A stretch of DNA of 64,000 nucleotides from Ylistrum balloti (Eukaryota): positions 124,001 through 188,000 of the forward strand of contig NW_026782200.1 in assembly GCF_031769215.1 (NCBI RefSeq), written 5' to 3'. Shown here piece by piece: positions 12,682 to 60,836 of the stretch. The number at the start of each line of letters is the position of its first letter. Position 1 is the first letter of the stretch. Made by a program: the position numbers and the translations under genes. Below the pieces are notes generated by a model. The model worked only from the letters and a program-made list of their open reading frames with translations, did no database searches and was not told the origin of the DNA.

Positions 12682-15600
12682 GTGAGTATTGATTTAGGTT
12701 GATAAGTAATGATGATTATTTGATTAAGTATTTTTGCGTCATAACTTAGTATAGTATTATGGGTAAATTATATATATACATATATATAGCCTGATACGGT
12801 GTATTTTGATTAACTTCCTAGTTTTATATGTATGGTGTGTTTCTTTTCATAGTATAGTGTCATATTCAGGAACTGTTTACATATGATCTAATAAAATTCG
12901 ATGTGACTTAATTTCAATATGTCAAGTTCTTGGAATGACATATTAAAATTTAAAAAAAATGCAGATATTTCATGAATTGTAGACTAAGTAGTTTTTTAAT
13001 CATACGTAGCCATGGTATCCCATAAAGTATGAAGTATAATCCTGTTAATTACTTGAACTTGTTCTTGTCACAATTCAATGACTTTCTGTTTTTAACACAT
13101 CCATTTATATATATATCCTACAATGGTGATACGGTTTAGACAGTTAAGATTTAGATGCTTTGAAACTAAGCTCATTGAAGATTCTCAATAAATCAAGTAA
13201 GTAAAAGGTACCCAGGGTTACATTGGTCAGTGTAAGTGATAATGTGTTATTGTATGTAGTTAACTTGTATTGCTGGATGCAGTCTGTGGATCACTGCTGT
13301 CTGTATGATATTGTCCGATACTGTATAACATTTCTGTTATTTTTTCTCAGCTTGCCTGCTGCTGTGGAAGTGCTGCTTGCAGTCTGTGCTGTGCTGCCTG
13401 TCCATCATGCAAGAATTCAACTGCTACCCGGATTGGTTACTCTCTTGTTCTAATTGTTGGAAGCATTATCGCCTGTATTTTCTTGGCTCCAGGTCTTCGA
13501 GGAGCACTAGATAAGGTCAGTATATAACAAAGTCATCTTCATTTTTAAGTGCCAGATATATATATGTGTGTGTCCTTTATAATTTTTGGGATTCGGATAT
13601 CAGAGGCCTAGACCCATGATCATGTAGGACTCATCCAAATTTTGACAACCCACTATATCTCTTCAGTAAATAATGGATTCTAATGGACAAACTTCCAAAA
13701 TGGCCACCATCTTGAAAAACATATTTTAAACTTCTCATGTTCCACTGGTGCTAAAAATTGGTGGAAATGTTAAGGGAAGGTATCCAACAAAGTGTTGTTA
13801 TTTTTCAACATTGTTCAAACTTCAATACAGCAGTCAGAGAGGCCATTTTGTAACATGATTGCACAGTCATGGTTTTCCTATGCAGCACCTATTTCAAACT
13901 TCTTCACAAGTATTAATAGTTGGATTAATCTCCAACTTAATTGTCAAAAAATAGGTAACACTTGTTACAGTTACCTAATCCTCACCAAACTACCATCTGC
14001 ATTTAACCTTCTAAGTAAGATTTTGTTCAAAGTAGAAAAATTAACCCTTCTCCATGTTCAAGTTTTTGTAGTCAGATGACTGTTATGATCTGTGGCTCTC
14101 TTGTTTCAATTGAGTATAGAAGACCATTTCCAAATGTTTGATGAGACCCAATACTAAGTGATATGTTTGTAACAGAGGTCATTTTTCATCTCAATGCCTC
14201 CGCTAGGAATCGAACCCGGGACCCCTGGCTTACTAGTCTGACGCTCAACCAATCGAGCTAAAGAGAAGTTCTCTCTAGCCGAGTGGTATATTGCGGCTAG
14301 TATTTTACCAGGGTTACATACTCCCCCTCCAGGAAATAACTCGTCCTCGAGTTTCCAGGGGTTACAGCGATGCCGATGGGGCATGGCTAAGTACTAATCC
14401 CGGGTCCCTACATGGGCGCCAATGTAACAGAGGTAATTTTTCATCTCAATGCCTCCGCTAGGAATCGAACCTGGGACCCCTGGCTTACTAGTCTGACGCT
14501 CAACCAATCGAGCTAAAGAGAAGTTCTCTCTAGCCGAGTGGTATATTGCGGCTAGTATTTTACCAGGGTTACATGTTGGTTTCTCAAAATTTCTGTGAGT
14601 CCCACAGGAAAAGCATAAGTCCAGGACTCAAATATTTGAAAACCAAAAGTTACTGATAGAGTATTTTGGATTTGCTTGTATTTCAGGCAAACACATTACA
14701 CCTTATCCATATACCAAAGATTTCTTTCGTAAAATGAAATAAAAAATTACTTGGATTTCTTCTTTTGCCCGGAGATCCTTTGGAAGATGTAATAACATTC
14801 ACAATTGTGTTATTTGTAAAGGTAACTTTCACTATATTGAGATGTGTTTTCATGTTAGATAATATAATAACGTTATGACATACCAACACATTATCATTTT
14901 CTGTATGTTTCTGGTTCATTGTGATCGCCTTTGGTTTGACTACATTTACCTCCATTTCTAGAAGTACAGATTGGTGGTATATTAGTTTGTACTATATATA
15001 GATTATCTATTCTATTTATAGGAAAGTTTGAGAGGATTGGATGCATTCCTTGGCCTGTCTTACGTATACATCTAGTTTCTTTTCCTATTATAGATACCTG
15101 GGCTATGTAAGGACTATTTCACTTATGACATTTTCGCGGCGGATCACGCCGACGACAAGGCGTCCATGTGCGATGATATCGTTGGCTACCTGTCTGTATA
15201 CAGAATCTGCTTTGCTATGGCTGCATTCTTCTTACTCTTTGCCATCATCATGATCAATGTGAAATCCTCCAAGGATCCAAGGGCTGGTATACAGAATGGG
15301 TGAGTAGCTGATGATGAAGATGATCAAAGACCTTAACCACTAGGCTGTCATATGTCTAATGATGGCAATTTGTCAACATTTGATCTGTTTTTTTCGTCGG
15401 AAGTGTGTGTGTGCCAGTCTGACTTATTGGATAACAATATGTTAGAATTTTGTTGGGGAAAAAGAAGGTTAACAGATCTGAGTTTTTTATTTTGTTTTTT
15501 CTCATTTTTTTTTGCGGTGAGGTAATCTTAAGAAAATTATGATCAACAATCAACTTCTGTAGGAAATTGCTGCATTTATCTTGTTTTCAGTGCTGTTATT

Positions 15601-33600: not shown

Positions 33601-36600
33601 TGACAGTAATTTTCTAGCATGTTCAAAGCTACATTAAATACCCAGTAAAATAACATTTTTACATGGACACTAACTTTTCCCATTACATGTTTGTGGCAAT
33701 TAACAACTGCAAAAAACCAACAACATATATCTGGACTCCACTATGTTATTATTTATTAACATGTAATTCACACTGATTGACTGTCATATGTTTGTTTAAA
33801 TCATCAGATTTATATTTGAAAAGCTTATTATTACAAAACAAAATAGATTTATTGTTTAAATTCTGGTATGCCAGAGTTGGCTTCAATGCCAAGCAGACAT
33901 CATTGTGCTTGACAAAGTAATGCAGTCTTACATTAATTTTTTACAGCTTCATCAGAATCTGACAAGGATGAAGAGAAAGGTGGTCAAAACGTCTGGGACA
34001 ATGAAGAAGATAGTGTAGCTTACAGTTATAGTTTCTTCCACTTCATGTTGTGTCTGGGTGCCCTGTATGTCATGATGACTCTCACCAACTGGTACAGGTA
34101 GGTACAGTTTCTTCCACTTCATGTTGTGTCTGGGTGCCCTGTATGTCATGATGACTCTCACCAACTGGTACAGGTAGGTACAGTTTCTTCCACTTCATGT
34201 TGTGTCTGGGTGCCCTGTATGTCATGATGACTCTCACCAACTGGTACAGGTAGGTACAGTTTCTTCCACTTCATGTTGTGTCTGGGTGCCCTGTATGTCA
34301 TGATGACTCTCACCAACTGGTACAGGTAGGTACAGTTTCTTCCACTTCATGTTGTGTCTGGGTGCCCTGTATGTCATGATGACTCTCACCAACTGGTACA
34401 GGTAGGTACAGTTTCTTCCACTTCATGTTGTGTCTGGGTGCCCTGTATGTCATGATGACTCTCACCAACTGGTACAGGTAGGTACAGTTTCTTCCACTTC
34501 ATGTTGTGTCTGGGTGCCCTGTATGTCATGATGACTCTCACCAACTGGTACAGGTAGGTACAGTTTCTTCCACTTCATGTTGTGTCTGGGTGCCCTGTAT
34601 GTCATGATGACTCTCACCAACTGGTACAGGTAGGTACAGTTTCTTCCACTTCATGTTGTGTCTGGGTGCCCTGTATGTCATGATGACTCTCACCAACTGG
34701 TACAGGTAGGTACAGTTTCTTCCACTTCATGTTGTGTCTGGGTGCCCTGTATGTCATGATGACTCTCACCAACTGGTACAGGTAGGTACAGTTTCTTCCA
34801 CTTCATGTTGTGTCTGGGTGCCCTGTATGTCATGATGACTCTCACCAACTGGTACAGGTAGGTACAGTTTCTTCCACTTCATGTTGTGTCTGGGTGCCCT
34901 GTATGTCATGATGACTCTCACCAACTGGTACAGGTAGGTACAGTTTCTTCCACTTCATGTTGTGTCTGGGTGCCCTGTATGTCATGATGACTCTCACCAA
35001 CTGGTACAGGTAGGTACAGTTTCTTCCACTTCATGTTGTGTCTGGGTGCCCTGTATGTCATGATGACTCTCACCAACTGGTACAGGTAGGTACAGTTTCT
35101 TCCACTTCATGTTGTGTCTGGGTGCCCTGTATGTCATGATGACTCTCACCAACTGGTACAGGTAGGTACAGTTTCTTCCACTTCATGTTGTGTCTGGGTG
35201 CCCTGTATGTCATGATGACTCTCACCAACTGGTACAGGTAGGTACAGTTTCTTCCACTTCATGTTGTGTCTGGGTGCCCTGTATGTCATGATGACTCTCA
35301 CCAACTGGTACAGGTAGGTACAGTTTCTTCCACTTCATGTTGTGTCTGGGTGCCCTGTATGTCATGATGACTCTCACCAACTGGTACAGGTAGGTACAGT
35401 TTCTTCCACTTCATGTTGTGTCTGGGTGCCCTGTATGTCATGATGACTCTCACCAACTGGTACAGGTAGGTACAGTTTCTTCCACTTCATGTTGTGTCTG
35501 GGTGCCCTGTATGTCATGATGACTCTCACCAACTGGTACAGGTAGGTACAGTTTCTTCCACTTCATGTTGTGTCTGGGTGCCCTGTATGTCATGATGACT
35601 CTCACCAACTGGTACAGGTAGGTACAGTTTCTTCCACTTCATGTTGTGTCTGGGTGCCCTGTATGTCATGATGACTCTCACCAACTGGTACAGGTAGGTA
35701 CAGTTTCTTCCACTTCATGTTGTGTCTGGGCGCCCTGTATGTCATGATGACTCTCACCAACTGGTACAGGTAGGTACAGTTTCTTCCACTTCATGTTGTG
35801 TATGGGTGCCCTGTATGTCATGATGACTCTCACCAACTGGTACAGGTAGGTACAGTTTCTTCCACTTCATGTTGTGTCTGGGTGCCCTGTATGTCATGAT
35901 GACTCTCACCAACTGGTACAGGTAGGTACATTTCTTCCACTTTATGTTGTGTCTGGGTGCCCTGTATGTCATGATGACTCTCACCAACTGGTACAGGTAG
36001 GTACAGTTTCTTCCACTTCATGTTGTGTCTGGGCGCCCTGTATGTCATGATGACACCAACTGGTACATGTAGGTAATTTCTTCCACTTCATGTTGTATCT
36101 GGGCGCCCTGTATGTCATGATGACTTGGGTTCATTAGAGTAGTGTCCTCAGGTGGATCCAGTTAGGGTTCATTAGAGAACATCCTCAGGTGGATCCAGTT
36201 AGGGTTCATTAGAGAACATCCTCAGGTGGATCCAGTTAGGGTTCATTAGAGAACATCCTCAGGTGGATCCAGTTGGGATTCATTAGAGAACGTCCTCAGG
36301 TGGATCCGTATAGAATTCATTAGAGTAGCGTCCTCGAGTGGATCCAGTAAGGATTCAATAGAGATCCCTAACAAAAAAACGTAATAATGTTCCGAATGTC
36401 TATAGCGGATGACATATTCCACAAAATGTCCTTGTAGTTTTGAGTTTCCTTTTTTGCTTTACTAGGTCGAAATAATGAAATTTTTATCTGCTGTCTCTTT
36501 GCAGCCCGAGTTCTGACTTTAACACTCTGAACTTCAACATGCCTGCGCTGTGGGTAAAGATCTCCTCGACCTGGGTTTGCTTAACCCTTTATGTCTGGAC

Positions 36601-47262: not shown

Positions 47263-48533
47263 TGTAACCTAACCGAGACGATGGATTGCAACACAAGAGA
47301 GAACAACAGTTTACACTATTTACATTTATTACAATTTACAAAACTACTGTCCAAAATGTACATATGGCATACCTAACATGATGAAATCTCTCACTCCACA
47401 GATTCATACTGCCAATAATGATATTTCACACCAGTCTACACACTATTATGAAGATGCTACACACAAATAACTACTACCTAAACCTATAAACTATAAACCC
47501 TAACCTACTCCTGGTATTCACATCCTATATACACCATATACACCCTACAGTTCATATATGAGCACAATCCGGCGACTGGTTCCCCTGCATAGCCCACACA
47601 ACAGAGTTTGTAGATCCTGACGTAGAGATGCTTCCTCCGTCATTCCATAGAGTGACTGTAAGTGTCCATATCTCCTGACTGTAGCACAGGACCGTATATG
47701 GCACAGTTCCACCAAATGAAAACACAATCTCGTAGTACGAGGTATATGAAGTCATCAGACAAATGGAGACGATCTCACCAAAAGATCACTGAAGATCACT
47801 AAAGAATTGACCGTAATATCGCCACAACACGCAGCTGGGCCTCCATAGCATCCATGCACTAATAGCGTTCAATATGACCGCAAAAACATGTCAACACAAC
47901 ACTCCTGCATCGCTCAACCGAATGCAGTACAACAACGACAGGAATAATCAACAACAAGACAACGAAGTGTCCATTCCGGTAACAATCATATGGCTGTTAC
48001 GGGCTTCCATACATGAAATTTCGCCGTCAGCTCATGATATGGTTCGGGCATGACATGGAGCTACAATATACAAATAATACCCTATAAGGCTATATTCTAC
48101 ACATTATAACTAATAAAGAAATGATTATATTTATTTCTATTACTGTAATCTATCTTAAGTAAACACGGCAATACACATCACCGCTCTCGATAACGCGTTC
48201 GCTCACCCTTTACCTGTATACTGATATAACTCGCTACGCACGGGCTAATACACCTATACGTTCACGAACGCTATCATACACGACTTATATATTCTTAATA
48301 AACATGATATAACTTACCGTGGCTGTATTTCACGCTCCCAAAGCTTTCCCGATGTTTCACACCTGTCAACACATCAAGATGTCCGCCCGAATACCTTACC
48401 CGTCGTCCTTTGCCCATGCGCGATAACTTTTAAAAGTTTCGCACGAGATTAAGGCGCAAAATTCAAACAATAAAATATAAATTCAACATACTTACAACCA
48501 GCCTGTATATAAGCTCATAATTCGTATGTGACA
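47263..48533 (-). repeat. Gypsy LTR A (3' LTR of the dimer), 1271 bp
   Basis: TGTAACCTAACC...CGTATGTGACA; adjacent purine-rich PPT GAGACCGGGGCGTG (48534-48547, minus strand). Confidence 0.95.
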
Positions 48534-48667
48534 CACGCCCCGGTCTCGAGAAATAAAATTGGGGAACAATTTTCATTTCCTTTTACATCACATACGCTGA
48601 TCCTTAGAATTCAGTTCAAAATGTCTCTAATTGATACCACTTAAGCAGAATCACATATGTTCACAAG

Positions 48668-51600
48668 TCACAGTCTACTTAAGCAATCCGCTCCCACGTT
48701 CTCCCTTCCTCGAATCGCCCTGATGGTGAATCTGTAGGGTTGTAATAACAGAGCCCATCTCATTAGACGAGAATTGGTACCCTTCAACTTGTTTAGGTAT
48801 AACAGCGGTTGATGGTCCGTCTCAAGAACAAATTGACGTCCATAGAGATAACGCTGGAATTTGAGCACTCCCCATACAACGGCCAAGCACTCCTTTTCAA
48901 CTACAGCGTAGGCAGTCTCAGCACCCTTGAGTTTCCTACTAGCGTAAGCGATGGGAAGACGATCTCCAGCCTCTTCCTGAAGAAGTACTGCACCAAGGCC
49001 ATAATCAGAGGCATCCGTCTGTAGGATAAATTCGTCCCCTAAACTTGGCAACTTCAGGATAGGACTTGAAGACAGAAGTTTCTTCAACGTTTCAAACGCT
49101 ATTTCTTGTGCTTCGCCCCAGACGATCTTGTGCGGTTGGCCCTTTCTCGTGAGGTCCGTCAAAGGTACAGATATGGCTGCGAAATCAGGGATAAACTTCC
49201 TATAATATCCAGCCATACCCATGAATGAACGTACCTGCTTCTTTGACTCAGGTCTTGGAACGCTCAAGATAGCCTTCACCTTATCTGGATGGGGTAGTAA
49301 CCGCTGATCTCCGATGATGTGTCCAAGACACTCTAAACTTCCATATACAAGTGCACATTTCGTAGGTCTGGCTGTGAGTCCAGCCTTCCGTAGACGAGTA
49401 AATAAATCTCTAAGAATTCGCATATGATCCTCCCAGCTCTTGGAGTAGACAAGAATATCGTCTATGAAGCTTTCAACACCTGACATACCTTTAAGTAGTT
49501 TCCTCATGATGCGGCAAAACGTCGCCGGTGCATTCACAAGGCCAAATGGCATCACTGAAAACTGAAAAAGTCCAAATGGTGTGGTAAATGCTGTCTTTTC
49601 CCGCGCATACTCTGACATTGGCACCTGCCAGTACCCTTTACTCAAATCTAGACGTGAAAAGTATCTGTGTCCAGAGAGTCTTGCAAAAATGTCGTCTGCA
49701 TTGGGCATTGGTTTGGCGTCAAATATTGTAACGCGGTTCAGTTGGCGGAAATCGATGCAAAACCGGTTTGTCCCGTCTTTCTTCCGTACAATCACAACCG
49801 GTGCTGCATATGGCGACTCCGACGGCTCAATGACACCCATATGTAACATCTTATCCAGCTCCTCCTTAATGGTGTTCTTCATACTGAATGGAACACTAGG
49901 GCTTCGGCCTCTAACAGGCTCGCTGGTTGTTGTTCGAATGTCATGTTTTCCAAGGTTAGTCCTTCCAGGCACATCCGTGAGTACGTCATCGAATTCCTCT
50001 AAGAGCGTCTTTACCTCCGTTGCTTGATCTGGTGTCAAAACCTCCGATATTGCGACGTCATCTATTGCTTCAGTCCTGGTCGGTGGAGGAATGGTAACAA
50101 TGTTCCCCGGAGAAAAATCTTTGCCGTCATTCTCATCCTCGTCTGTTACCATGGCAACACAAACGACTGAAAATATTCCTACATCCAGTCCAACAACTAC
50201 ATTGCTCTCCCGCTCAACGTACAACTTCAAGAGGTTAGCATGCAACGTCTTCTTCCCTTCAATGTTTACCCTGTAGTCCATAGACCCTCTTTTCTCTTCA
50301 ATTACGTATGGTCCTCTCCATTGCATTAAGAGCTTATTCCTCTTGGTCGGTAGAAGAACCAATACCTTCTGTCCAGGTTTCATATCACGAGCTCTTGCCT
50401 TCTTGTTGTAATACCTTGCTTGACGTCTCTTGGCTGATCTGAGTTGCTCTTGTGCAAGCTGACATGTTTCTTCTAACTTATCCTTCAGGTCCACTAAGTA
50501 CTGATAGGTGGTCTTTGTGTCTGGGTCAGGAACCTCCTTCGTCCAAAGCTCTCTGAGAATCATCATTGGTCCCCTTACTGTCCTGCCATACAACAACTCA
50601 AACGGCGAATATCCGAGGCTTTCCTGGGGTACCTCGCGGTAGGCGAATAACAGCGCACTCAGGTACTTATCCCAGTCTCGCGGACGCTCAGCACACATCT
50701 TCTTCAACATTCCCTTCAACGTTCCATTGAATCGTTCCACTAAGCCATTGCACATAGGGTGGTATGGAGAAGTGGACAACTGGCGAATGGACAACAATCT
50801 GCTAACTTCTTGCATCAGCTCCGAGGTAAACTGAGTTCCACAATCAGTGAGTACCTCACGGGGTATTCCAACTCGACTGTAAACATCTACCAGGGCCTCA
50901 GCTACACGTTCGGTCTCTATGCCTCTTAAAGCGACTGCCTCTGGGTAACGGGTAGCATAATCCACTATTGTGAGGATGTAACGATTACCACGATCGGTGA
51001 CTGGCTGCAATGGACCTACCAAATCGATCGCAACACGCTGGAATGGGGTATCGATTAAAGGCATCTGTCCCAAAGGTAGCTTGCTTACCCTTCCTTTAGG
51101 AATTGTCCTCTGGCATATATCGCATGACCTACAAAATCTGGTGACATCTGATGCCATACCCGGCCAAAAGAACTCTGTTCGAATCCTCTCCATTGTCCTC
51201 TTTGCCCCAAGATGTCCAGCCATCATTGTGTCGTGAGCAAGTTTCAACACAGTTGAACGCAACTCTTCGGGTATCACCAGCTGCTTGAACACTCGTCCAT
51301 TTCCAACTCCTGGACTCTGAAACTCTCTATAAAGCAGTCCTCGACTCACATAAAATCGCGATGTTCCACCATCTGATCTGTCCTTTACACCACCTTCCCT
51401 TGCCAAACTCCAGTACTTCGTCAGTGATCCATCAGTTTTCTGTGTCTCCCTGATCTCTTCAGGCGTTCCCATAACTTGCATGACCTTCGGCACCTTTAGA
51501 GGATGATATTGCTGATTGTCCTTCTTTACTTGGGCCCTTGTCTGAACTGCTTGTACCACATCCGCTGGCTTCCAGTCTAAGTCTGGGTCGTTGGCGTGTC

Positions 51601-52180
51601 TAACTCCCGGAATATTTCCCAATATCAAATCGTACACGGGATTATCCATGCACCAAGCACATACACTTCCTGTAAAATAAGGAGAATCCACAGATAATCT
51701 AGCAATAGGTACAGTAAGCTTATCACCATTAGCCAATAGACAGGACTGCGTCTCACCGGTCACCTCTTCTTCGGATACAAGACTCCTCCGGATAACACCT
51801 CCTGAACAGCCAGTGTCTCTAAGCACCATCACAGGTCGATTACCAACGCGTCCCTTCACCACAGGCATATCACCGCTCATCGGTCGTTCACATGAAGTCG
51901 TCAGTATATTGGTCTCTGTCGTATCCATTTCCTTCTTAACTTTCTCGTCATCACAGTTCTTCACACGAAAAGTACCAGCCTTATTAACCTTGGAGGAAAC
52001 ACATTGGACCTGGCCCTTCTTTGACTTCCTTGGACAGTTATAGGATAAATGGTCGGCCTTGTTACATATGAAGCAATGCTTACTTGACCCTGAGCCCGTC
52101 TGCTTATTCTTATAACCTGATTCCGAACTTGGCTGCTTCAATGTAGAGACATCCCCACTCTTTCCATTAGCTCCGACCAT
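48668..52180 (-). CDS. pol: Gypsy copy 1 pol, open 1170-aa frame: zinc knuckle, aspartic protease, integrase, RT, RNase H
   Basis: CFICNKADHLSYNC; LRDTGCS; HDTMMAGHLG...CRSCDICQ; IDLVG / LTDCG / VERFN (DDE); RFCIDFRQLN, LDLSKGYWQ, MPFGLVNAPATF, FIDDILV; LQTDASDYGLGAVL, EKECLAVVW, ETDHQPL, ADCLSR. Confidence 0.95.
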   Translation of the reverse strand: MVGANGKSGDVSTLKQPSSESGYKNKQTGSGSSKHCFICNKADHLSYNCPRKSKKGQVQCVSSKVNKAGTFRVKNCDDEKVKKEMDTTETNILTTSCERPMSGDMPVVKGRVGNRPVMVLRDTGCSGGVIRRSLVSEEEVTGETQSCLLANGDKLTVPIARLSVDSPYFTGSVCAWCMDNPVYDLILGNIPGVRHANDPDLDWKPADVVQAVQTRAQVKKDNQQYHPLKVPKVMQVMGTPEEIRETQKTDGSLTKYWSLAREGGVKDRSDGGTSRFYVSRGLLYREFQSPGVGNGRVFKQLVIPEELRSTVLKLAHDTMMAGHLGAKRTMERIRTEFFWPGMASDVTRFCRSCDICQRTIPKGRVSKLPLGQMPLIDTPFQRVAIDLVGPLQPVTDRGNRYILTIVDYATRYPEAVALRGIETERVAEALVDVYSRVGIPREVLTDCGTQFTSELMQEVSRLLSIRQLSTSPYHPMCNGLVERFNGTLKGMLKKMCAERPRDWDKYLSALLFAYREVPQESLGYSPFELLYGRTVRGPMMILRELWTKEVPDPDTKTTYQYLVDLKDKLEETCQLAQEQLRSAKRRQARYYNKKARARDMKPGQKVLVLLPTKRNKLLMQWRGPYVIEEKRGSMDYRVNIEGKKTLHANLLKLYVERESNVVVGLDVGIFSVVCVAMVTDEDENDGKDFSPGNIVTIPPPTRTEAIDDVAISEVLTPDQATEVKTLLEEFDDVLTDVPGRTNLGKHDIRTTTSEPVRGRSPSVPFSMKNTIKEELDKMLHMGVIEPSESPYAAPVVIVRKKDGTNRFCIDFRQLNRVTIFDAKPMPNADDIFARLSGHRYFSRLDLSKGYWQVPMSEYAREKTAFTTPFGLFQFSVMPFGLVNAPATFCRIMRKLLKGMSGVESFIDDILVYSKSWEDHMRILRDLFTRLRKAGLTARPTKCALVYGSLECLGHIIGDQRLLPHPDKVKAILSVPRPESKKQVRSFMGMAGYYRKFIPDFAAISVPLTDLTRKGQPHKIVWGEAQEIAFETLKKLLSSSPILKLPSLGDEFILQTDASDYGLGAVLLQEEAGDRLPIAYASRKLKGAETAYAVVEKECLAVVWGVLKFQRYLYGRQFVLETDHQPLLYLNKLKGTNSRLMRWALLLQPYRFTIRAIRGRENVGADCLSRL

Positions 52181-53041
52181 CTGGGCGAAACTTCAGTAGA
52201 TTCGCAGTGTGTCCCCTGGCATCTGCAAACTGGTCCGCAAGTTTAGCCATCTCGCCAACTGTTGCTGGTATGCGCTCCTTCAGGAACAATGTCAACTCGT
52301 TCCCACAGGCTTGGATGAACTGGTCCCGAATGATCAAATCCTTTAAGCCTTCAAATGTCTTTGGTGTCTTTGCCATTTCCAGCCATCTCATGAAATAGCT
52401 GTCGAGCCTTACAGCAAACTGCGTAAAAGTTTCTCCCGCTTCCGGTCGTCCAGTCTTGAATTTCTTCCTAAAGCCTTGCGCAGTTGTCTCAAATCTCTTC
52501 AACAATGAGTCCTTCAGTACATTATAATCTAGGCTCTGCTCCACGGGAAGTCTGCTGAACACATCTAAAGCTCTGCCTTTCAGAAGTACGCTTAAGTTAG
52601 AAGCCCACTGTTTCTCCATATCCCATCCTTGAGTAGTCGCAAACCTCTCGAATCTCTGTAGATACGAGTCAATATTATCTTTGCCCTCCTCAAACGCTGG
52701 AAGTTTAGGTCCCCTCAAGTCACTTCCGGTCACATTTGGCTTCACGTCCTGCTTACCTGTCAGTTGTAAGACTTCTACCTGTCGTTGATGTTCCCTCATA
52801 GCCATCTCTTCTTTCTCCTTTATAAGTGCTAACTGTATTTCCATTTCCTTCTCAGCTGCTCTGGACTTCTCCTGAATCATCTGTAAATCATGCTGCCTCT
52901 CGGCCTCTATCTTCCTTGCTTCTCTTTCCCGTTCCCGCTCATCTCTTTCCTTGGCTTGCTCTGATGAATAAACTGTTGTAGTTCCTTTCCTTCTAAACCA
53001 ATATCTATTCCAATTTCCTTCAACTCCTTCAACGACGTCAT
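52167..53041 (-). pseudogene. gag: Gypsy copy 1 gag (SCAN-like capsid), with a 1-bp frameshift near 52965
   Basis: The true start MTSLKELKEIG (ATG at 53041) is out of frame with EQAKERDER because CTCTGATGAA replaces the CTCTGACAGAA of copy 2. The rest reads KLPAFEEGKDNIDSYLQRFERFA...ETFTQFAVRLDSYFMRWL. Confidence 0.85.
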
Positions 53042-53461
53042 GGTATACACACAACGATACAAGTACTATGCACAAAACAATTGGAATAAAAACAGAACAG
53101 ATCTAGGAATCTTTTACACTAGTGAACTATCGCCAATAGTCCTGAAATACGCATGTAACAACAATGTAACATGTACACAAAGCACAAACACCATAAATGT
53201 TGCAAGAGATATTCGTACCTGAAACGTAAATTCAGTCCCTGAAATGCTCTGCTTGAAAACAAAGAAAATCCACTTACCTTTATTATAGGCTCTCTTCCTT
53301 ACTTGAATGACGACAGTGGCTTTCCAGGGTGTACTATACTGATCATTAAACCAACACACTCATATTTGCTCCACCACAACACACAAGACACTTATACAGA
53401 AATATTTCAGACTGCAAAGTGTAATAATTTCAATACAAAATGTCAAACATGTGCGCAATCC

Positions 53462-53479
53462 ATCCCACCGCTGCCACCA
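53462..53479 (-). promoter_or_regulatory. Primer-binding site complementary to the tRNA-Leu 3' end; repeated at 59553-59570
   Basis: TGGTGGCAGCGGTGGGAT, the complement of the Leu(AAG/TAG)-type 3' end ATCCCACCGCTGCCACCA, separated from the LTR by 5 nt. Confidence 0.85.
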
Positions 53480-53484
53480 AAAAT

Positions 53485-54732
53485 TGTAACCTAACCGAGA
53501 CGATGGATTGCAACACAAGAGAGAACAACAGTTTACACTATTTACATTTAATACAATTTACAAAACTACTCTCCAAAATGTACATTTGGCATACCTAACA
53601 TGATGAAATCTCTCACTCCACAGATTCATACTGCCATAATGATATTTCACACCAGTCTACACACTATTATGAAGATGCTACACACAAATAACTACTACCT
53701 AAACCTATAAACTATAAACCCTAACCTACTCCTGGTATTCACATCCTATATACACCATATACACCCTACAGTTCATATATGAGCACAATCCGGCGACTGG
53801 TTCCCCTGCATAGCCCACACAACAAAGTTTGTAGATCCTGACGTAGATATGCCTCCTCCGTCATTCCATAGAGTGACTGTAAGTGTCCATATCTCCTGAC
53901 TGTAGCACAGGACCGTATATGGCACAGTTCCACCAAATGAAAACACAATCTCGTAGTACGAGGTATATGAAGTCATCAGACAAATGGAGACAATCTCACC
54001 AAAAGATCACTGAAGATCACTAAAGAATTGACCATAATATCGCCACAACACGCAGCTGGACCTCCATAGCATCCATGCACTAATAGCGTTCAATATGACC
54101 GCAAAGACATGTCAACACAACACTCCTGCATCGCTCAACCGAATGCAGTACAACAACTACAGGAATAATCAACAACAAGACAACGAAGTGTCCATTCTGG
54201 CCATATGGCTGTTACGGGCTTCCATACATGAAATTTCGCCGTCAGCTCATGATATGGTTCGGGCATGACATGGAGCTACAATATACAAATAATACCCTAT
54301 AAGGCTATATTCTACACATTATAACTAATAAAGAAATGAATATATTTATTTCTATCTTAAGTAAACACGGCAATACACATCACCGCTCTCGATAACGCGT
54401 TCGCTCACCCTTTACCTGTATACTGATATAACTCGCTACGCACGGGCTAATACACCTATACGTTCACGGACGCTATCATACACGACTTATATCTTAATAA
54501 ACATGATATAACTTACCGTGGCTGTATTTCACGCTCCCAAAGCTTTCCCGATGTTTCACACCTGTCAACACATCAAGATGTCCGCCCGAATACCTTACCC
54601 GTCGTCCTTTGCCCATGCGCGATAACTTTTAAAAGTTTCGCACGAGATTAAGGCGCAAAATTCAAACAATAAAATATAAATTCAACATACTTACAACCAG
54701 CCTGTATATAAGCTCATAATTCGTATGTGACA
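53485..54732 (-). repeat. Gypsy LTR B (shared middle LTR), 1248 bp
   Basis: Same termini as LTR A; carries private 6-, 13- and 3-bp deletions. Confidence 0.95.
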
Positions 54733-54866
54733 CACGCCCCGGTCTCGAGAAATAAAATTGGGGAACAATTTTCATTTCCTTTTACATCACATACGCTGAT
54801 CCTTAGAATTCAGTTCAAAATGTCTCTAATTGATACCACTTAAGCAGAATCACATATGTTCACAAG

Positions 54867-57800
54867 TCACAGTCTACTTAAGCAATCCGCTCCCACGTTC
54901 TCCCTTCCTCGAATCGCCCTGATGGTGAATCTGTAGGGTTGTAATAACAGAGCCCATCTCATTAGACGAGAATTGGTACCCTTCAACTTGTTTAGGTATA
55001 ACAGCGGTTGATGGTCCGTCTCAAGAACAAATTGACGTCCATAGAGATAACGCTGGAATTTGAGCACTCCCCATACAACGGCCAAGCACTCCTTTTCAAC
55101 TACAGCGTAGGCAGTCTCAGCACCCTTGAGTTTCCTACTAGCGTAAGCGATGGGAAGACGATCTCCAGCCTCTTCCTGAAGAAGTACTGCACCAAGGCCA
55201 TAATCAGAGGCATCCGTCTGTAGGATAAATTCGTCCCCTAAACTTGGCAACTTCAGGATAGGACTTGAAGACAGAAGTTTCTTCAACGTTTCAAACGCTA
55301 TTTCTTGTGCTTCGCCCCAGACGATCTTGTGCGGTTGGCCCTTTCTCGTGAGGTCCGTCAAAGGTACAGATATGGCTGCGAAATCAGGGATAAACTTCCT
55401 ATAATATCCAGCCATACCCATGAATGAACGTACCTTCTTCTTTGACTCAGGTCTTGGAACGCTCAAGATAGCCTTCACCTTATCTGGATGGGGTAGTAAC
55501 CGCTGATCTCCGATGATGTGTCCAAGACACTCTAAACTTCCATATACAAGTGCACATTTCGTAGGTCTGGCTGTGAGTCCAGCCTTCCGTAGACGAGTAA
55601 ATAAATCTCTAAGAATTCGCATATGATCCTCCCAGCTCTTGGAGTAGACAAGAATATCGTCTATGAAGCTTTCAACACCTGACATACCTTTAAGTAGTTT
55701 CCTCATGATGCGGCAAAACGTCGCCGGTGCATTCACAAGGCCAAATGGCATCACTGAAAACTGAAAAAGTCCAAATGGTGTGGTAAATGCTGTCTTTTCC
55801 CGCGTATACTCTGACATCGGCACCTGCCAGTACCCTTTACTCAAATCTAGACGTGAAAAGTATCTGTGTCCAGAGAGTCTTGCAAAAATGTCGTCTGCAT
55901 TGGGCATTGGTTTGGCGTCAAATATTGTAACGCGGTTCAGTTGGCGGAAATCGATGCAAAACCGGTTTGTCCCGTCTTTCTTCCGTACAATCACAACCGG
56001 TGCTGCATATGGCGACTTCGACGGCTCAATGACACCCATATGTAACATCTTATCCAGCTCCTCCTTAATGGTGTTCTTCATACTGAATGGAACACTAGGG
56101 CTTCGGCCTCTAACAGGCTCGCTGGTTGTTGTTCGAATGTCATGTTTTCCAAGGTTAGTCCTTCCAGGCACATCCGTGAGTACGTCATCGAATTCCTCTA
56201 AGAGCGTCTTTACCTCCGTTGCTTGATCTGGTGTCAAAACCTCCGATATTGCGACGTCATCTATTGCTTCAGTCCTGGTCGGTGGAGGAATGGTAACAAT
56301 GTTCCCCGAAGAAAAATCTTTGCCGTCATTCTCATCCTCGTCTGTTACCATGGCAACACAAACGACTGACAATATTCCTACATCCAGTCCAACAACTACA
56401 TTGCTCTCCCGCTCAACGTACAACTTCAAGAGGTTAGCATGCAACGTCTTCTTCTTCCCTTCAATGTTTACCCTGTAGTCCATAGACCCTCTTTTCTCTT
56501 CAATTACGTATGGTCCTCTCCATTGCATTAAGAGCTTGTTCCTCTTGGTCGGTAGAAGAACCAATACCTTCTGTCCAGGTTTCATATCACGAGCTCTTGC
56601 CTTCTTGTTGTAATACCTTGCTTGACGTCTCTTGGCTGATCTGAGTTGCTCTTGTGCAAGCTGACATGTTTCTTCTAACTTATCCTTCAGGTCCACTAAG
56701 TACTGATAGGTGGTCTTTGTGTCTGGGTCAGGAACCTCCTTCGTCCAAAGCTCTCTGAGAATCATCATTGGTCCCCTTACTGTCCTGCCATACAACAACT
56801 CAAACGGCGAATATCCGAGGCTTTCCTGGGGTACCTCGCGGTAGGCGAATAACACGCACTCAGGTACTTATCCCAGTCTCGCGGACGCTCAGCACACATC
56901 TTCTTCAACATTCCCTTCAACGTTCCATTGAATCGTTCCACTAAGCCATTGCACATAGGGTGGTATGGAGAAGTGGACAACATCTACCAGGGCCTCAGCT
57001 ACACGTTCGGTCTCTATGCCTCTTAAAGCGACTGCCTCTGGGTAACGGGTAGCATAATCCACTATTGTGAGGATGTAACGATTACCACGATCGGTGACTG
57101 GCTGCAATGGACCTACCAAATCGATCGCAACACGCTGGAATGGGGTATCGATTAAAGGCATCTGTCCCAAAGGTAGCTTGCTTACCCTTCCTTTAGGAAT
57201 TGTCCTCTGGCATATATCGCATGACCTACAAAATCTGGTGACATCTGATGCCATACCCGGCCAAAAGAACTCTGTTCGAATCCTCTCCATTGTCCTCTTT
57301 GCCCCAAGATGTCCAGCCATCATTGAGTCGTGAGCAAGTTTCAACACAGTTGAACGCAACTCTTCGGGTATCACCAGCTGCTTGAACACTCGTCCATTTC
57401 CAACTCCTGGACTCTGAAACTCTCTATAAAGCAGTCCTCGACTCACATAAAATCGCGATGTTCCACCATCTGATCTGTCCTTTACACCACCTTCCCTTGC
57501 CAAACTCCAGTACTTCGTCAGTGATCCATCAGTTTTCTGTGTCTCCCTGATCTCTTCAGGCGTTCCCATAACTTGCATGACCTTCGGCACCTTTAGAGGA
57601 TGATATTGCTGATTGTCCTTCTTTACTTGGGCCCTTGTCTGAACTGCTTGTACCACATCCGCTGGCTTCCAGTCTAAGTCTGGGTCGTTGGCGTGTCTAA
57701 CTCCCGGAATATTTCCCAATATCAAATCGTACACGAAATTATCCATGCACCAAGCACATACACTTCCTGTAAAATAAGGAGAATCCACAGATAATCTAGC

Positions 57801-58277
57801 AATAGGTACAGTAATCTTATCACCATTAGCCAATACACAGGACTGCGTCTCACCGGTCATCTCTTCTTCGGATACAAGACTCCTCCGGATAACAGCTCCT
57901 GAACAGCCAGTGTCTCTAAGCACCATCACAGGTCGATTACCAACGCGTCCCTTCACCACAGGCATATCACCTCTCATCGGTCGTTCACATGAAGTCGTCA
58001 GTATATTGGTCTCTGTCGTATCCATTTCCTTCTTAACTTTCTCGTCATCACAGTTCTTCACACGAAAAGTACCAGCCTTATTAACCTTGGAGGAAACACA
58101 TTGGACCTGGCCCTTCTTTGACTTCCTTGGACAGTTATAGGATAAATGGTCGGCCTTGTTACATATGAAGCAATGCTTACCTGACCCTGAGCCCGTCTGC
58201 TTATTCTTATAACCTGATTCCGAACTTGGCTGCTTCAATGTAGAGACATCCCCACTCTTTCCATTAGCTCCGACCAT
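54867..58277 (-). pseudogene. pol: Gypsy copy 2 pol, disrupted in integrase
   Basis: 104-bp deletion at 56981/56982 removes YSRVGIP...LTDCG...QL (second catalytic Asp); 1-bp deletion near 56855; the RT-RNase H part (54867-56855) is still open. Confidence 0.92.
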
Positions 58278-59128
58278 CTGGGCGAAACTTCAGTAGATTC
58301 GCAGTGTGTCCCCTGGCATCTGCAAACTGGTCCGCAAGTTTAGCCATCTCGCCAACTGTTGCTGGTATGCGCTCCTTCAAGAACAATGTCAACTCGTTCC
58401 CACAGGCTTGGATGAACTGGTCCCGAATGATCAAATCCTTTAAGCCTTCAAATGTCTTTGGTGTCTTTGCCATTTCCAGCCATCTCATGAAATAGCTGTC
58501 GAGCCTTACAGCAAACTGCGTAAAAGTTTCTCCCGCTTCCGGTCGTCCAGTCTTGAATTTCTTGCTCAGTTGTCTCAAATCTCTTCAACAATGAGTCCTT
58601 CAGTACATTATAATCTAGGCTCTGCTCCACGGGAAGTCTGCTGAACACATCTAAAGCTCTGCCTTTCAGAAGTACGCTTAAGTTAGAAGCCCACTGTTTC
58701 TCCATATCCCATCCTTGAGTAGTCGCAAACCTCTCGAATCTCTGTAGATACGAGTCAATATTATCTTTGCCCTCCTCAAACGCTGGAAGTTTAGGTCCCC
58801 TCAAGTCACTTCCGGTCACATTTGGCTTCACGTCCTGCTTACCTGTCAGTTGTAAGACTTCTACCTGTCGTTGATGCTCCCTCATAGCCATCTCTTCTTT
58901 CTTCTTTATAAGTGCTAACTGTATTTCCATTTCCTTCTCAGCTGCTCTGGACTTCTCCTGAATCATCTGTAAATCATGCTGCCTCTCGGCCTCTATCTTC
59001 CTTGCTTCTCTTTCCCGTTCCCGCTCATCTCTTTCCTTGGCTTGCTCTGACAGAATAAACTGTTGTAGTTCCTTTCCTTCTAAACCAATATCTATTCCAA
59101 TTTCCTTCAACTCCTTCAACGACGTCAT
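58264..59128 (-). pseudogene. gag: Gypsy copy 2 gag with an 11-bp frameshifting deletion
   Basis: Intact N-terminus MTSLKELKEIGIDIGLEGKELQQFILSEQAK; CCTAAAGCCTT of copy 1 is missing at 58563/58564. Confidence 0.9.
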
Positions 59129-59575
59129 GGTATACACAAAACAATACAAGTACTATGCACAAAACAATTGGAATAAAAACAGTCAGAACAGATCTAGTAA
59201 TCTTTTACACTAGTGAACTATCGCCAATAGTCCTGAAATACGCATGTAACAACAATGTAACATGTACACAAAGCACAAACACCATAAATGTTGCAAGAGA
59301 TATTCGTACCTGAAACGTAAATTCAGTCCCTGAAATGCTCTGCTTGAAAACAAAGAAAATCCACTTACCTTTATTATAGGCTCTCTTCCTTACTTGAATG
59401 ACGACAGTGGCTTTCCAGGGTGTACTATACTGATCATTAAAGCAACACACTCATATTTGCTCCACCACAACACACAAGACACTTATACAGAAATATTTCA
59501 GACTGCAAAGTGTAATAATTTCAATACAAAATGTCAAACATGTGCGCAATCCATCCCACCGCTGCCACCAAAAAT

Positions 59576-60836
59576 TGTAACCTAACCGAGACGATGGATT
59601 GCAACACAAGAGAGAACAACAGTTTACACTATTTACATTTATTACAATTTACAAAACTACTGTCCAAAATGTACATATGGCATACCTAACATGATGAAAT
59701 CTCTCACTCCACAGATTCATACTGCCATAATGATATTTCACACCAGTCTACACACTATTATGAAGATGCTACACACAAATAACTACTACCTAAACCTATA
59801 AACTTTAAACCCTAACCTACTCCTGGTATTCACATCCTATATACACCCTACAGTTCATATATGAGCACAATCCGGCGACTGGTTCCCCTGCATAGCCCAC
59901 ACAACAAAGTTTGTAGATCCTGACGTAGAGATGCCTCCTCCGTCATTCCATAGAGTGACTGTAAGTGTCCATATCTCCTGACTGTAGCACAGGACCGTAT
60001 ATGGCACAGTTCCACCAAATGAAAACACAATCTCGTAGTACGAGGTATATGAAGTCATCAGACAAATGGAGACGATCTCACCAAAAGATCACTGAAGATC
60101 ACTAAAGAATTGACCATAATATCGCCACAACACGCAGCTGGGCCTCCATAGCATCCATGCACTAATAGCGTTCAATATGACCGCAAAAACATGTCAACAC
60201 AACACTCCTGCATCGCTCAACCGAATGCAGTACAACAACGACAGGAATAATCAACAACAAGACAACGAAGTGTCCATTCCGGTAACAATCATATGGCTGT
60301 TACGGGCTTCCATACATGAAATTTCGCCGTCAGCTCATGATATGGTTCGGGCATGACATGGAGCTACAATATACAAATAATACCCTATAAGGCTATATTC
60401 TACACAATATAACTAATAAAGAAATGATTATATTTATTTCTATTACTGTAATCTATCTTAAGTAAACACGGCAATACACATAACCGCTCTCGATAACGCG
60501 TTCGCTCACCCTTTACCTGTATACTGATATAACTCGCTACGCACGGGCTAATACACCTATACGTTCACGAACGCTATCATACACGACTTATATATTCTTA
60601 ATAAACATGATATAACTTACCGTGGCTGTATTTCACGCTCCCAAAGCTTTCCCGATGTTTCACACCTGTCAACACATCAAGATGTCCGCCCGAATACCTT
60701 ACCCGTCGTCCTTTGCCCATGCGCGATAACTTTTAAAAGTTTCGCACGAGATTAAGGCGCAAAATTCAAACAATAAAATATAAATTCAACATACTTACAA
60801 CCAGCCTGTATATAAGCTCATAATTCGTATGTGACA
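59576..60836 (-). repeat. Gypsy LTR C (5' LTR of the dimer), 1261 bp
   Basis: Same termini; followed by TSD CAAGG and resumption of the 53-bp satellite. Confidence 0.95.

Follow-up and report, generated by a model that had tools for sequence, protein, structure and literature searches.

A 64,000-nucleotide (nt) stretch of the Ylistrum balloti genome (contig NW_026782200.1, positions 124,001 to 188,000; hereafter the window) almost certainly carries, at 14168-14573, a complete and recently inserted terminal-repeat retrotransposon in miniature (TRIM) of the Helenus type (TRIMp3 in Kojima 2024). Both long terminal repeats (LTRs) of this non-coding element include a segment resembling tRNA-Thr(AGT). 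The likely overall explanation is a Helenus-type TRIM that would be transcribed by RNA polymerase III (Pol III) from this segment and inserted in trans by Ty3/Gypsy machinery. The coordinates of the element and of its host gene are collected in Table 1.

A complete Helenus-type element and its family

Repeat comparison found direct repeats at 14168-14319 and 14423-14574, which lie 255 bp apart and are 99% identical. On the minus strand they form 151-bp LTRs, bounded by TGTAAC...GTTACA, that differ from each other at two sites (LTR positions 102 and 139). The original prediction had described this pair as well as the primer-binding site (PBS), the polypurine tract (PPT) and the target site duplication (TSD) of 4 bp; all of these were located in the sequence, with AACA as the TSD on both flanks. 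It had also called the element young, a fair description given two differences per 151 bp. The element sense was assigned to the minus strand because the LTRs, the order of PBS and PPT, and the AACA flanks read that way. Exons matching the Pfam Serinc family lie on the plus strand on either side, and the copy therefore lies in an intron of its host gene, SERINC, in antisense orientation.

Table 1. Positions of the Helenus copy, its parts and the adjacent host exons in the window
Feature	Positions	Strand	Details
Complete Helenus copy	14168-14573	- (sense)	406 bp, non-coding; 2 LTRs, PBS, PPT, TSD
5' LTR	14423-14573	-	151 nt, TGTAAC...GTTACA
3' LTR	14168-14318	-	151 nt; 2 differences vs 5' LTR
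Interior	14319-14422	-	104 nt, non-coding; opens with T + TGGCGCCCATGTAGGGAC, closes with GGAGGGGGAG + TA
PBS TGGCGCCCATGTAGGGAC	14404-14421	-	Exact complement of the 3' 18 nt (including CCA) of tRNA-Lys(UUU) of the same genome
PPT GGAGGGGGAG	14321-14330	-	Followed by TA, then the 3' LTR
tRNA-Thr(AGT)-like segment, 5' LTR	14450-14522	-	A box TAGCTCGATTGG, B box GGTTCGATTCC; presumed Pol III start region; Rfam RF00005
tRNA-Thr(AGT)-like segment, 3' LTR	14195-14267	-	Register of 14450-14522 shifted by 255
Inverted repeat CTAGCCG/CGGCTAG	14530-14555	-	7-bp arms (14549-14555, 14530-14536), 12-nt loop; also at 14275-14300 in the 3' LTR
TSD, 5' side in element sense	14574-14577	.	TGTT on the plus strand, AACA in sense
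TSD, 3' side in element sense	14164-14167	.	TGTT on the plus strand
SERINC exon	13354-13524	+	Pfam Serinc positions 1-57; upstream of the insertion
SERINC exon	15127-15300	+	Pfam Serinc positions 58-111; downstream of the insertion

The primer is probably tRNA-Lys(UUU) of the same genome, as judged by an exact match over the 18 nt of the PBS. A word search found ten genomic loci that read CTTTTAATC...GGGTTCGAGTCCCTACATGGGCG, comprising the Lys(UUU) anticodon loop, the T arm and the acceptor end. Once CCA is added, the last 18 nt of the GGGTTCGAGTCCCTACATGGGCG-type 3' end complement the PBS exactly.

A search of the 648.5-Mb assembly returned 2,310 first-look candidates, and all 40 of those that were scored matched the element. 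Forty-three places were near full-length, at 95-100% identity. Thirty loci were fetched, 27 of which are independent: two pairs were in each case one place fetched twice, and a third pair was a 2-kb segmental duplicate. A perfect 4-bp TSD was present in 25 of the 27 independent copies, and the TSDs were varied and AT-rich. The original prediction had named a lack of other copies with paired LTRs and 4-bp TSDs as the result that would speak against it; the genome holds many such copies. The segmental duplicate comprises C31:942900-943305 and C31:944969-945374 (L018 and L025), which have identical flanks and the same TSD and lie 2,069 bp apart. This pair is a local segmental duplication that carried Helenus along, not two insertions.

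LTR pairs differed at 0 to 12 sites among the copies. Three fetched copies had identical pairs, so that the insertion at 14168-14573 does not mark the latest activity of the family. Tandem forms of the order LTR-interior-LTR-interior-LTR occurred at three places (on C653, C181 and C173); the two that were read are 661 bp long and have one TSD each. The one solo LTR examined, a diverged one (L004:830-979), has no intact TSD. Exact-word counts over the genome were 85 for the LTR/PBS junction and 218 for the T arm. Contigs of four DNA runs showed a summed LTR depth thousands of times that of the single-copy flank, a depth that is not to be read as a copy number, and the contigs across the insertion at 14168-14573 broke at the element edges.

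Variation among the copies was scored against a majority string of 30 TRIM copies, which served solely for counting differences. The 5' end of the LTR and the final 43 interior nt varied least (0.8% non-majority cells), and the middle of the interior varied most (6.2%). At least five further, more diverged Helenus families or copies were also seen (L032/L047, L034, L035, L036 and L040, with the solo LTR at L004:830-979), which have in common the tRNA-Lys PBS and a CTTTAGCTCGAT...GGTTCGAATCC core.

TRIMs with tRNA-like LTRs have been named Helenus, and 51 such families, all short, are known from pteriomorph bivalves (Kojima 2024, PMC10886601). According to the same study, TSDs in animals are 4 bp long, the primers include tRNA-Lys, bivalve families carry tRNA-Thr relics, and tandem arrays occur. 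The element at 14168-14573 has the same short, non-coding build, with an LTR pair, a PBS and a PPT at the LTR edges and a 4-bp TSD. It is also homologous, by shared words and long stretches aligned by eye, to three named scallop families in the supplement of that study: Helenus-1_PeMa (Pecten maximus), Helenus-2_ArIr (Argopecten irradians) and Helenus-3_MiYe (Mizuhopecten yessoensis). All have the LTR start TGTAACCCTGG, the CTAGCCG/CGGCTAG repeat, the tRNA-Thr(AGT) relic, the LTR end CTCTGTTACA, the PBS and the 4-bp TSD, and the final ~55 interior nt, PPT included, are near-identical. Over the first ~128 nt of the LTR, about 8 differences separate our element from Helenus-1_PeMa (alignment by eye). 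However, its LTR is 151 nt long as opposed to 159-160 nt in the three families, a different stretch of ~25 nt precedes the LTR end, and the middle of the interior is dissimilar.

These homologs uphold the assignment to the Helenus type made in the original prediction. Its suggestion that the family may be unannotated fits as well: no family listed by Kojima (2024) has the lengths 151/104/406, and words specific to the family are absent from the sequence file of that paper. Judged by its sequence, the family looks like a further, species-specific member of the known scallop Helenus lineage. By itself, the element thus changes little: a group that was described in 2024 gains one species-specific family.

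LTR-11_DR of zebrafish and Helenus-2C_CGi of oyster, two examples of other animal Helenus, are likewise TRIMs with a tRNA-like LTR and a 4-bp TSD. The primers used include tRNA-Lys, LTR and interior form tandem arrays, and copies number hundreds to thousands, but these elements have no useful similarity to our element beyond the tRNA motifs, and their relics are of other origin. Cassandra is also a non-autonomous LTR element with a small-RNA gene and its internal Pol III promoter in the LTR; its Pol III transcripts are experimentally supported, according to Kojima (2024). Cassandra differs in occurring in plants and in carrying 5S rRNA rather than tRNA. Rfam scans up to E = 10 found no 5S rRNA match here, which sets the element apart from Cassandra and Ajax. 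The biv-TRIM elements of bivalves resemble it in forming solo repeats and tandem arrays, and they have no canonical PBS and a conserved interior motif, TGATCCCAAAGGAC (Satovic et al. 2019, PMC6934838). Our element has a perfect PBS, and TGATCCCAAAGGAC is absent from its 104-nt interior; it is thus not a biv-TRIM.

Nor is it a short interspersed element (SINE) of the SINE2 class, with a single tRNA head, no LTRs and a tail copied by a long interspersed element (LINE), given the LTR pair, the PBS, the PPT and the fixed 4-bp TSD. A local duplication of a tRNA-derived SINE would account for the presence of a tRNA-like repeat and nothing more. It would not place a tRNA-Lys PBS and a PPT exactly at the LTR edges, and the dispersed copies with the same ends and 4-bp TSDs (25 of 27) already refute it, leaving this explanation with a negligible probability.

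The tRNA-like segment and the proposed transcript

Aligned to the LTR alone, the Rfam tRNA model (RF00005) matched end to end (model positions 1-71 of 71) at 14450-14522 on the minus strand. The alignment bears out the predicted 73-nt tRNA-Thr(AGT)-like segment in element sense, with the A box, the B box and the D stem kept and the anticodon stem broken. The D arm and the T loop are intact and AGU stands at the anticodon, while three of the five anticodon-stem pairs are broken and two of the seven acceptor pairs are mismatched. The label Thr(AGT) rests on this anticodon position and on the tRNAscan result of Kojima (2024) for bivalves; a genome pattern search for a genuine tRNA-Thr(AGT) gene returned Helenus variants only. 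The boxes of the relic, TAGCT...TGG (A) and GGTTCGATTCC (B), fit the Helenus motifs TRGCY and YGG (box A) and GGTTC (box B) given in that study. The relic begins at LTR position 52, that is, at window position 14522, near which the original prediction had expected a transcription start.

The sense strand of the copy at 14168-14573 contains no TTTT, in agreement with the original prediction. The same is true of 28 of 30 other copies, and every copy contains AAAA, usually six times (overlaps counted). TTTT is also absent, by eye, from Helenus-1_PeMa, Helenus-2_ArIr and Helenus-3_MiYe. Past the 3' LTR of our copy, the first run of four Ts (T4) is found 128 nt downstream. Across copies, the median distance to the first downstream T4 was ~115 nt, like that of the opposite-side control.

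We regard Pol III as the best mechanism for driving the family and, from its sequence features, as a fairly probable one. Pol III would initiate at the relic of the 5' LTR, near 14522. Because the sense strand offers no T4 stop, the polymerase would read across the interior and the entire 3' LTR and would halt at a T-run in the flank, the first being the one 128 nt downstream. LTR positions 1-51 would then represent U3, and positions 52-151 would represent R plus U5. Synthesis of minus-strand DNA would be primed by tRNA-Lys(UUU) and that of plus-strand DNA by the PPT, after which a Ty3/Gypsy integrase supplied in trans would insert the copy with a 4-bp duplication.

Several observations weigh against a promoter role for the relic. 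The tRNA-like segment scores 15.4 bits, below the Rfam threshold of 29. ARAGORN did not call a tRNA on it, and an Rfam scan of 1.1 kb around the element gave no tRNA match at E values up to 1. Among the copies, the tRNA part is not conserved beyond its surroundings (2.6% non-majority cells vs 2.3-2.4% in the rest of the LTR). In addition, an LTR without an internal terminator leaves the 3' end of the RNA undefined. The low score and the lack of extra conservation are both expected if the element is a TRIM of the same build whose relic is the fossil of an old SINE or tRNA insertion, the RNA being made by Pol II from an LTR promoter or by read-through from the host. Kojima (2024) likewise describes Pol III transcription of Helenus as unvalidated, without experimental proof. 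However, bivalve families of different orders retain the A and B box motifs while other parts of the tRNA decay, and T4 is missing from the sense strand only, in this and three related families. Host read-through cannot yield sense RNA of our copy, since the copy is antisense to SERINC and such a transcript would be of the wrong strand. The shortness of all Helenus elements is also as expected for Pol III. Transcription by Pol II appears unlikely.

The tRNA-like module might instead serve mainly, or additionally, as an RNA signal, such as a cut site for RNase P or RNase Z or a packaging handle. The acceptor, D and T arms are the parts read by tRNA-processing enzymes; they are largely kept in the relic, and the LTR has no T-run terminator. 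Cutting, however, would remove the 5' LTR copy and thereby destroy the repeat needed for strand transfer, and two of the seven acceptor pairs are mismatched. We consider this role improbable.

The original prediction had also placed a 7-bp hairpin, CTAGCCG/CGGCTAG, ahead of the tRNA part. The inverted repeat is present, with its arms at LTR positions 19-25 and 38-44, but its folding is not borne out. The LTR RNA has a stable predicted fold (z = -4.3), and in the minimum-energy structure these bases pair with others. The hairpin lacks structural support because the repeat is kept across the scallop Helenus families without a compensating change. Its loop carries AATATA, about 25 to 20 nt ahead of the relic start; going by what is generally known of tRNA promoters, this motif could act as a TATA-like aid to Pol III. 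The fold of the interior RNA was no more stable than that of shuffled sequences (z = -0.5).

With its many young copies, the family is a good test case for whether Pol III drives Helenus. The tRNA-like LTRs also scatter possible Pol III entry sites through genes, and, numbering in the thousands, they can inflate tRNA gene counts in genome annotation.

A Gypsy family as candidate helper

We know of no autonomous partner for an animal Helenus beyond PBS similarity. A Gypsy dimer within the window (47263-60836) was rejected as helper, since the window has no second tRNA-Lys PBS. The genome was then searched for the exact PBS beside an LTR end unlike that of Helenus, a census that LTR ends with C at -8 or -11 escaped. 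It returned 17 places: six belong to other Helenus families (five distinct sites and a probable duplicate), four to a family that we call G, and seven to Helenus interiors behind foreign DNA. No other Gypsy-like family was found among the 17.

The G LTR is 338-415 nt long, has TGTCAC...GTGACA ends (TGTCACAGGGTAAA...GGTGTGACA) and is followed by a TT spacer. G and Helenus have 21 identical nt at the PBS, and the 5' end of the G LTR, TGTCACAGGGTAAA, resembles TGTAACCCTGGTAAAA of Helenus. The original prediction had suggested looking for an autonomous Gypsy or BEL partner with TGTAAC termini, a tRNA-Lys-type PBS and a 4-bp TSD. In G, the PBS is indeed the same, but the termini are only similar.

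Three tandem G copies on C854 (L048, L051 and L049; C854:13000-39999) have an interior of ~5.2 kb with a single open reading frame (ORF) of ~240 codons, gag-like in an Atlas feature search (score 0.89; a lead only). No other ORF reaches 150 codons, and tblastn with the pol of the window Gypsy found no pol; these copies were therefore rejected as the autonomous partner. They matched no retroelement Pfam family, the only hit being a weak, sub-threshold one to TMEM249. Another locus, L057 (C1132:19406-23177), matches positions 893-2486 of the G interior at 89-90%, and past this alignment comes a reverse transcriptase (RVT_1, E = 2.4e-26) that is 41% identical to the pol of the window Gypsy. The stretch between the gag-like ORF and the reverse transcriptase is split among frames. 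A G-type LTR follows on the same strand, 3.3 kb beyond the reverse transcriptase. The reverse transcriptase DNA recurs on C834 (96%) and C844 (91%), with a same-strand G LTR 9.1 kb and 0.4 kb downstream, respectively. Thus, G is a low-copy Ty3/Gypsy family with both pol-less and pol-bearing members. The first 1,500 nt of L057 (C1132:19406-20905) are a satellite-like array with <5% G and ~26-nt units resembling ATCACCCATCACACATCCTATCATCC; it abuts the 5' side of the G relative and creates false long ORFs in three frames.

Three loci join G to Helenus. In L039 (C520:731475-734501), a complete G LTR gives way at the PBS to Helenus sequence, first an interior and then a 3' LTR. TATA flanks this hybrid as a 4-bp TSD, and its 5' copy sits precisely where the G LTR is known, from other loci, to begin. 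An older locus, L037 (C465:56928-59954), has the same build, with the G LTR cut at its 5' end and a G-type TT spacer. The PBS is again the point where a G LTR passes into a Helenus interior at C250:858078-858118, of which the junction alone was read.

The two LTRs of an element come out alike from a normal round of reverse transcription. Under the standard retroviral scheme, a hybrid of this kind would form if plus-strand strong-stop DNA of G landed on the PBS of a Helenus minus strand, that is, by intermolecular plus-strand transfer. A PBS-joined hybrid produced in this way would therefore place both templates in one particle. We tentatively read the chimeras, with a confidence just short of even, as the footprint of such transfer at the shared 18-nt PBS, Helenus and G RNA having been reverse-transcribed in the same particle. 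Two points count against this. A TSD is present in one chimera alone, L039, and in AT-rich DNA a chance match of TATA is expected about once in 100; moreover, no reciprocal chimera (Helenus LTR with G interior) was found within 2 mismatches. If the reading is true, an animal Helenus would for the first time have a concrete autonomous partner, namely G, and the approach would allow TRIMs to be paired with their helpers from sequence alone. PBS-exact chimeras could give a direct, testable link to a helper, a more useful outcome than the element itself.

Five further loci (L033, L038, L041, L042 and L046) consist of a Helenus interior and 3' LTR, with unrelated DNA in place of the 5' LTR and the joint exactly at the PBS. 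Two of these were tested, and their replacing DNA belongs to other repeats of 8-18 copies. For L038 and L042, the proposal that the upstream DNA is a short foreign LTR with a TSD was withdrawn, since a longer-query control showed that the repeats extend upstream beyond the predicted LTR start.

Whether G is the helper of Helenus appears evenly balanced on the present sequences, its pol-bearing copies having been read only in part. Helenus may instead be mobilized by another Gypsy family, with the chimeras reflecting shared third-party machinery or DNA recombination. The G copies on C854 lack pol and are themselves dependants, in the five loci above the DNA on the other side of the PBS joint comes from neither G nor Helenus, and a helper with C at -8 or -11 of its LTR would be invisible to the census. 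Against this stand the pol-bearing relatives of G and the fact that G was the only Gypsy-like user of the exact PBS among the 17 places. A helper other than G is a serious possibility, to which we give somewhat less than even weight.

Host gene and surrounding repeats

The original prediction had placed the insertion in SERINC intron 2. Its location in an intron between two Serinc exons holds. The Helenus copy is nested in another repeat (window positions 13620-14609). In the contig runs, the depth of the flanks at 13704-14067 and 14588-14639 is ~100-200 times that of single-copy DNA, and imperfect 33-nt inverted repeats occur at 13620-13652 and 14577-14609, the right arm beginning just past the TSD. 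The surrounding repeat may be a host element resembling a miniature inverted-repeat transposable element.

Farther along the window, at 34100-35922 (C343:158100-159922), Serinc Pfam positions 366-392 are matched ~24 times in tandem, with a 76-nt spacing and a TAG inside most matches. A Helenus-like LTR core is also found near a second SERINC gene, at C333:757153-757199, ~250 bp upstream of the first Serinc exon of that gene (C333:757447-757602).

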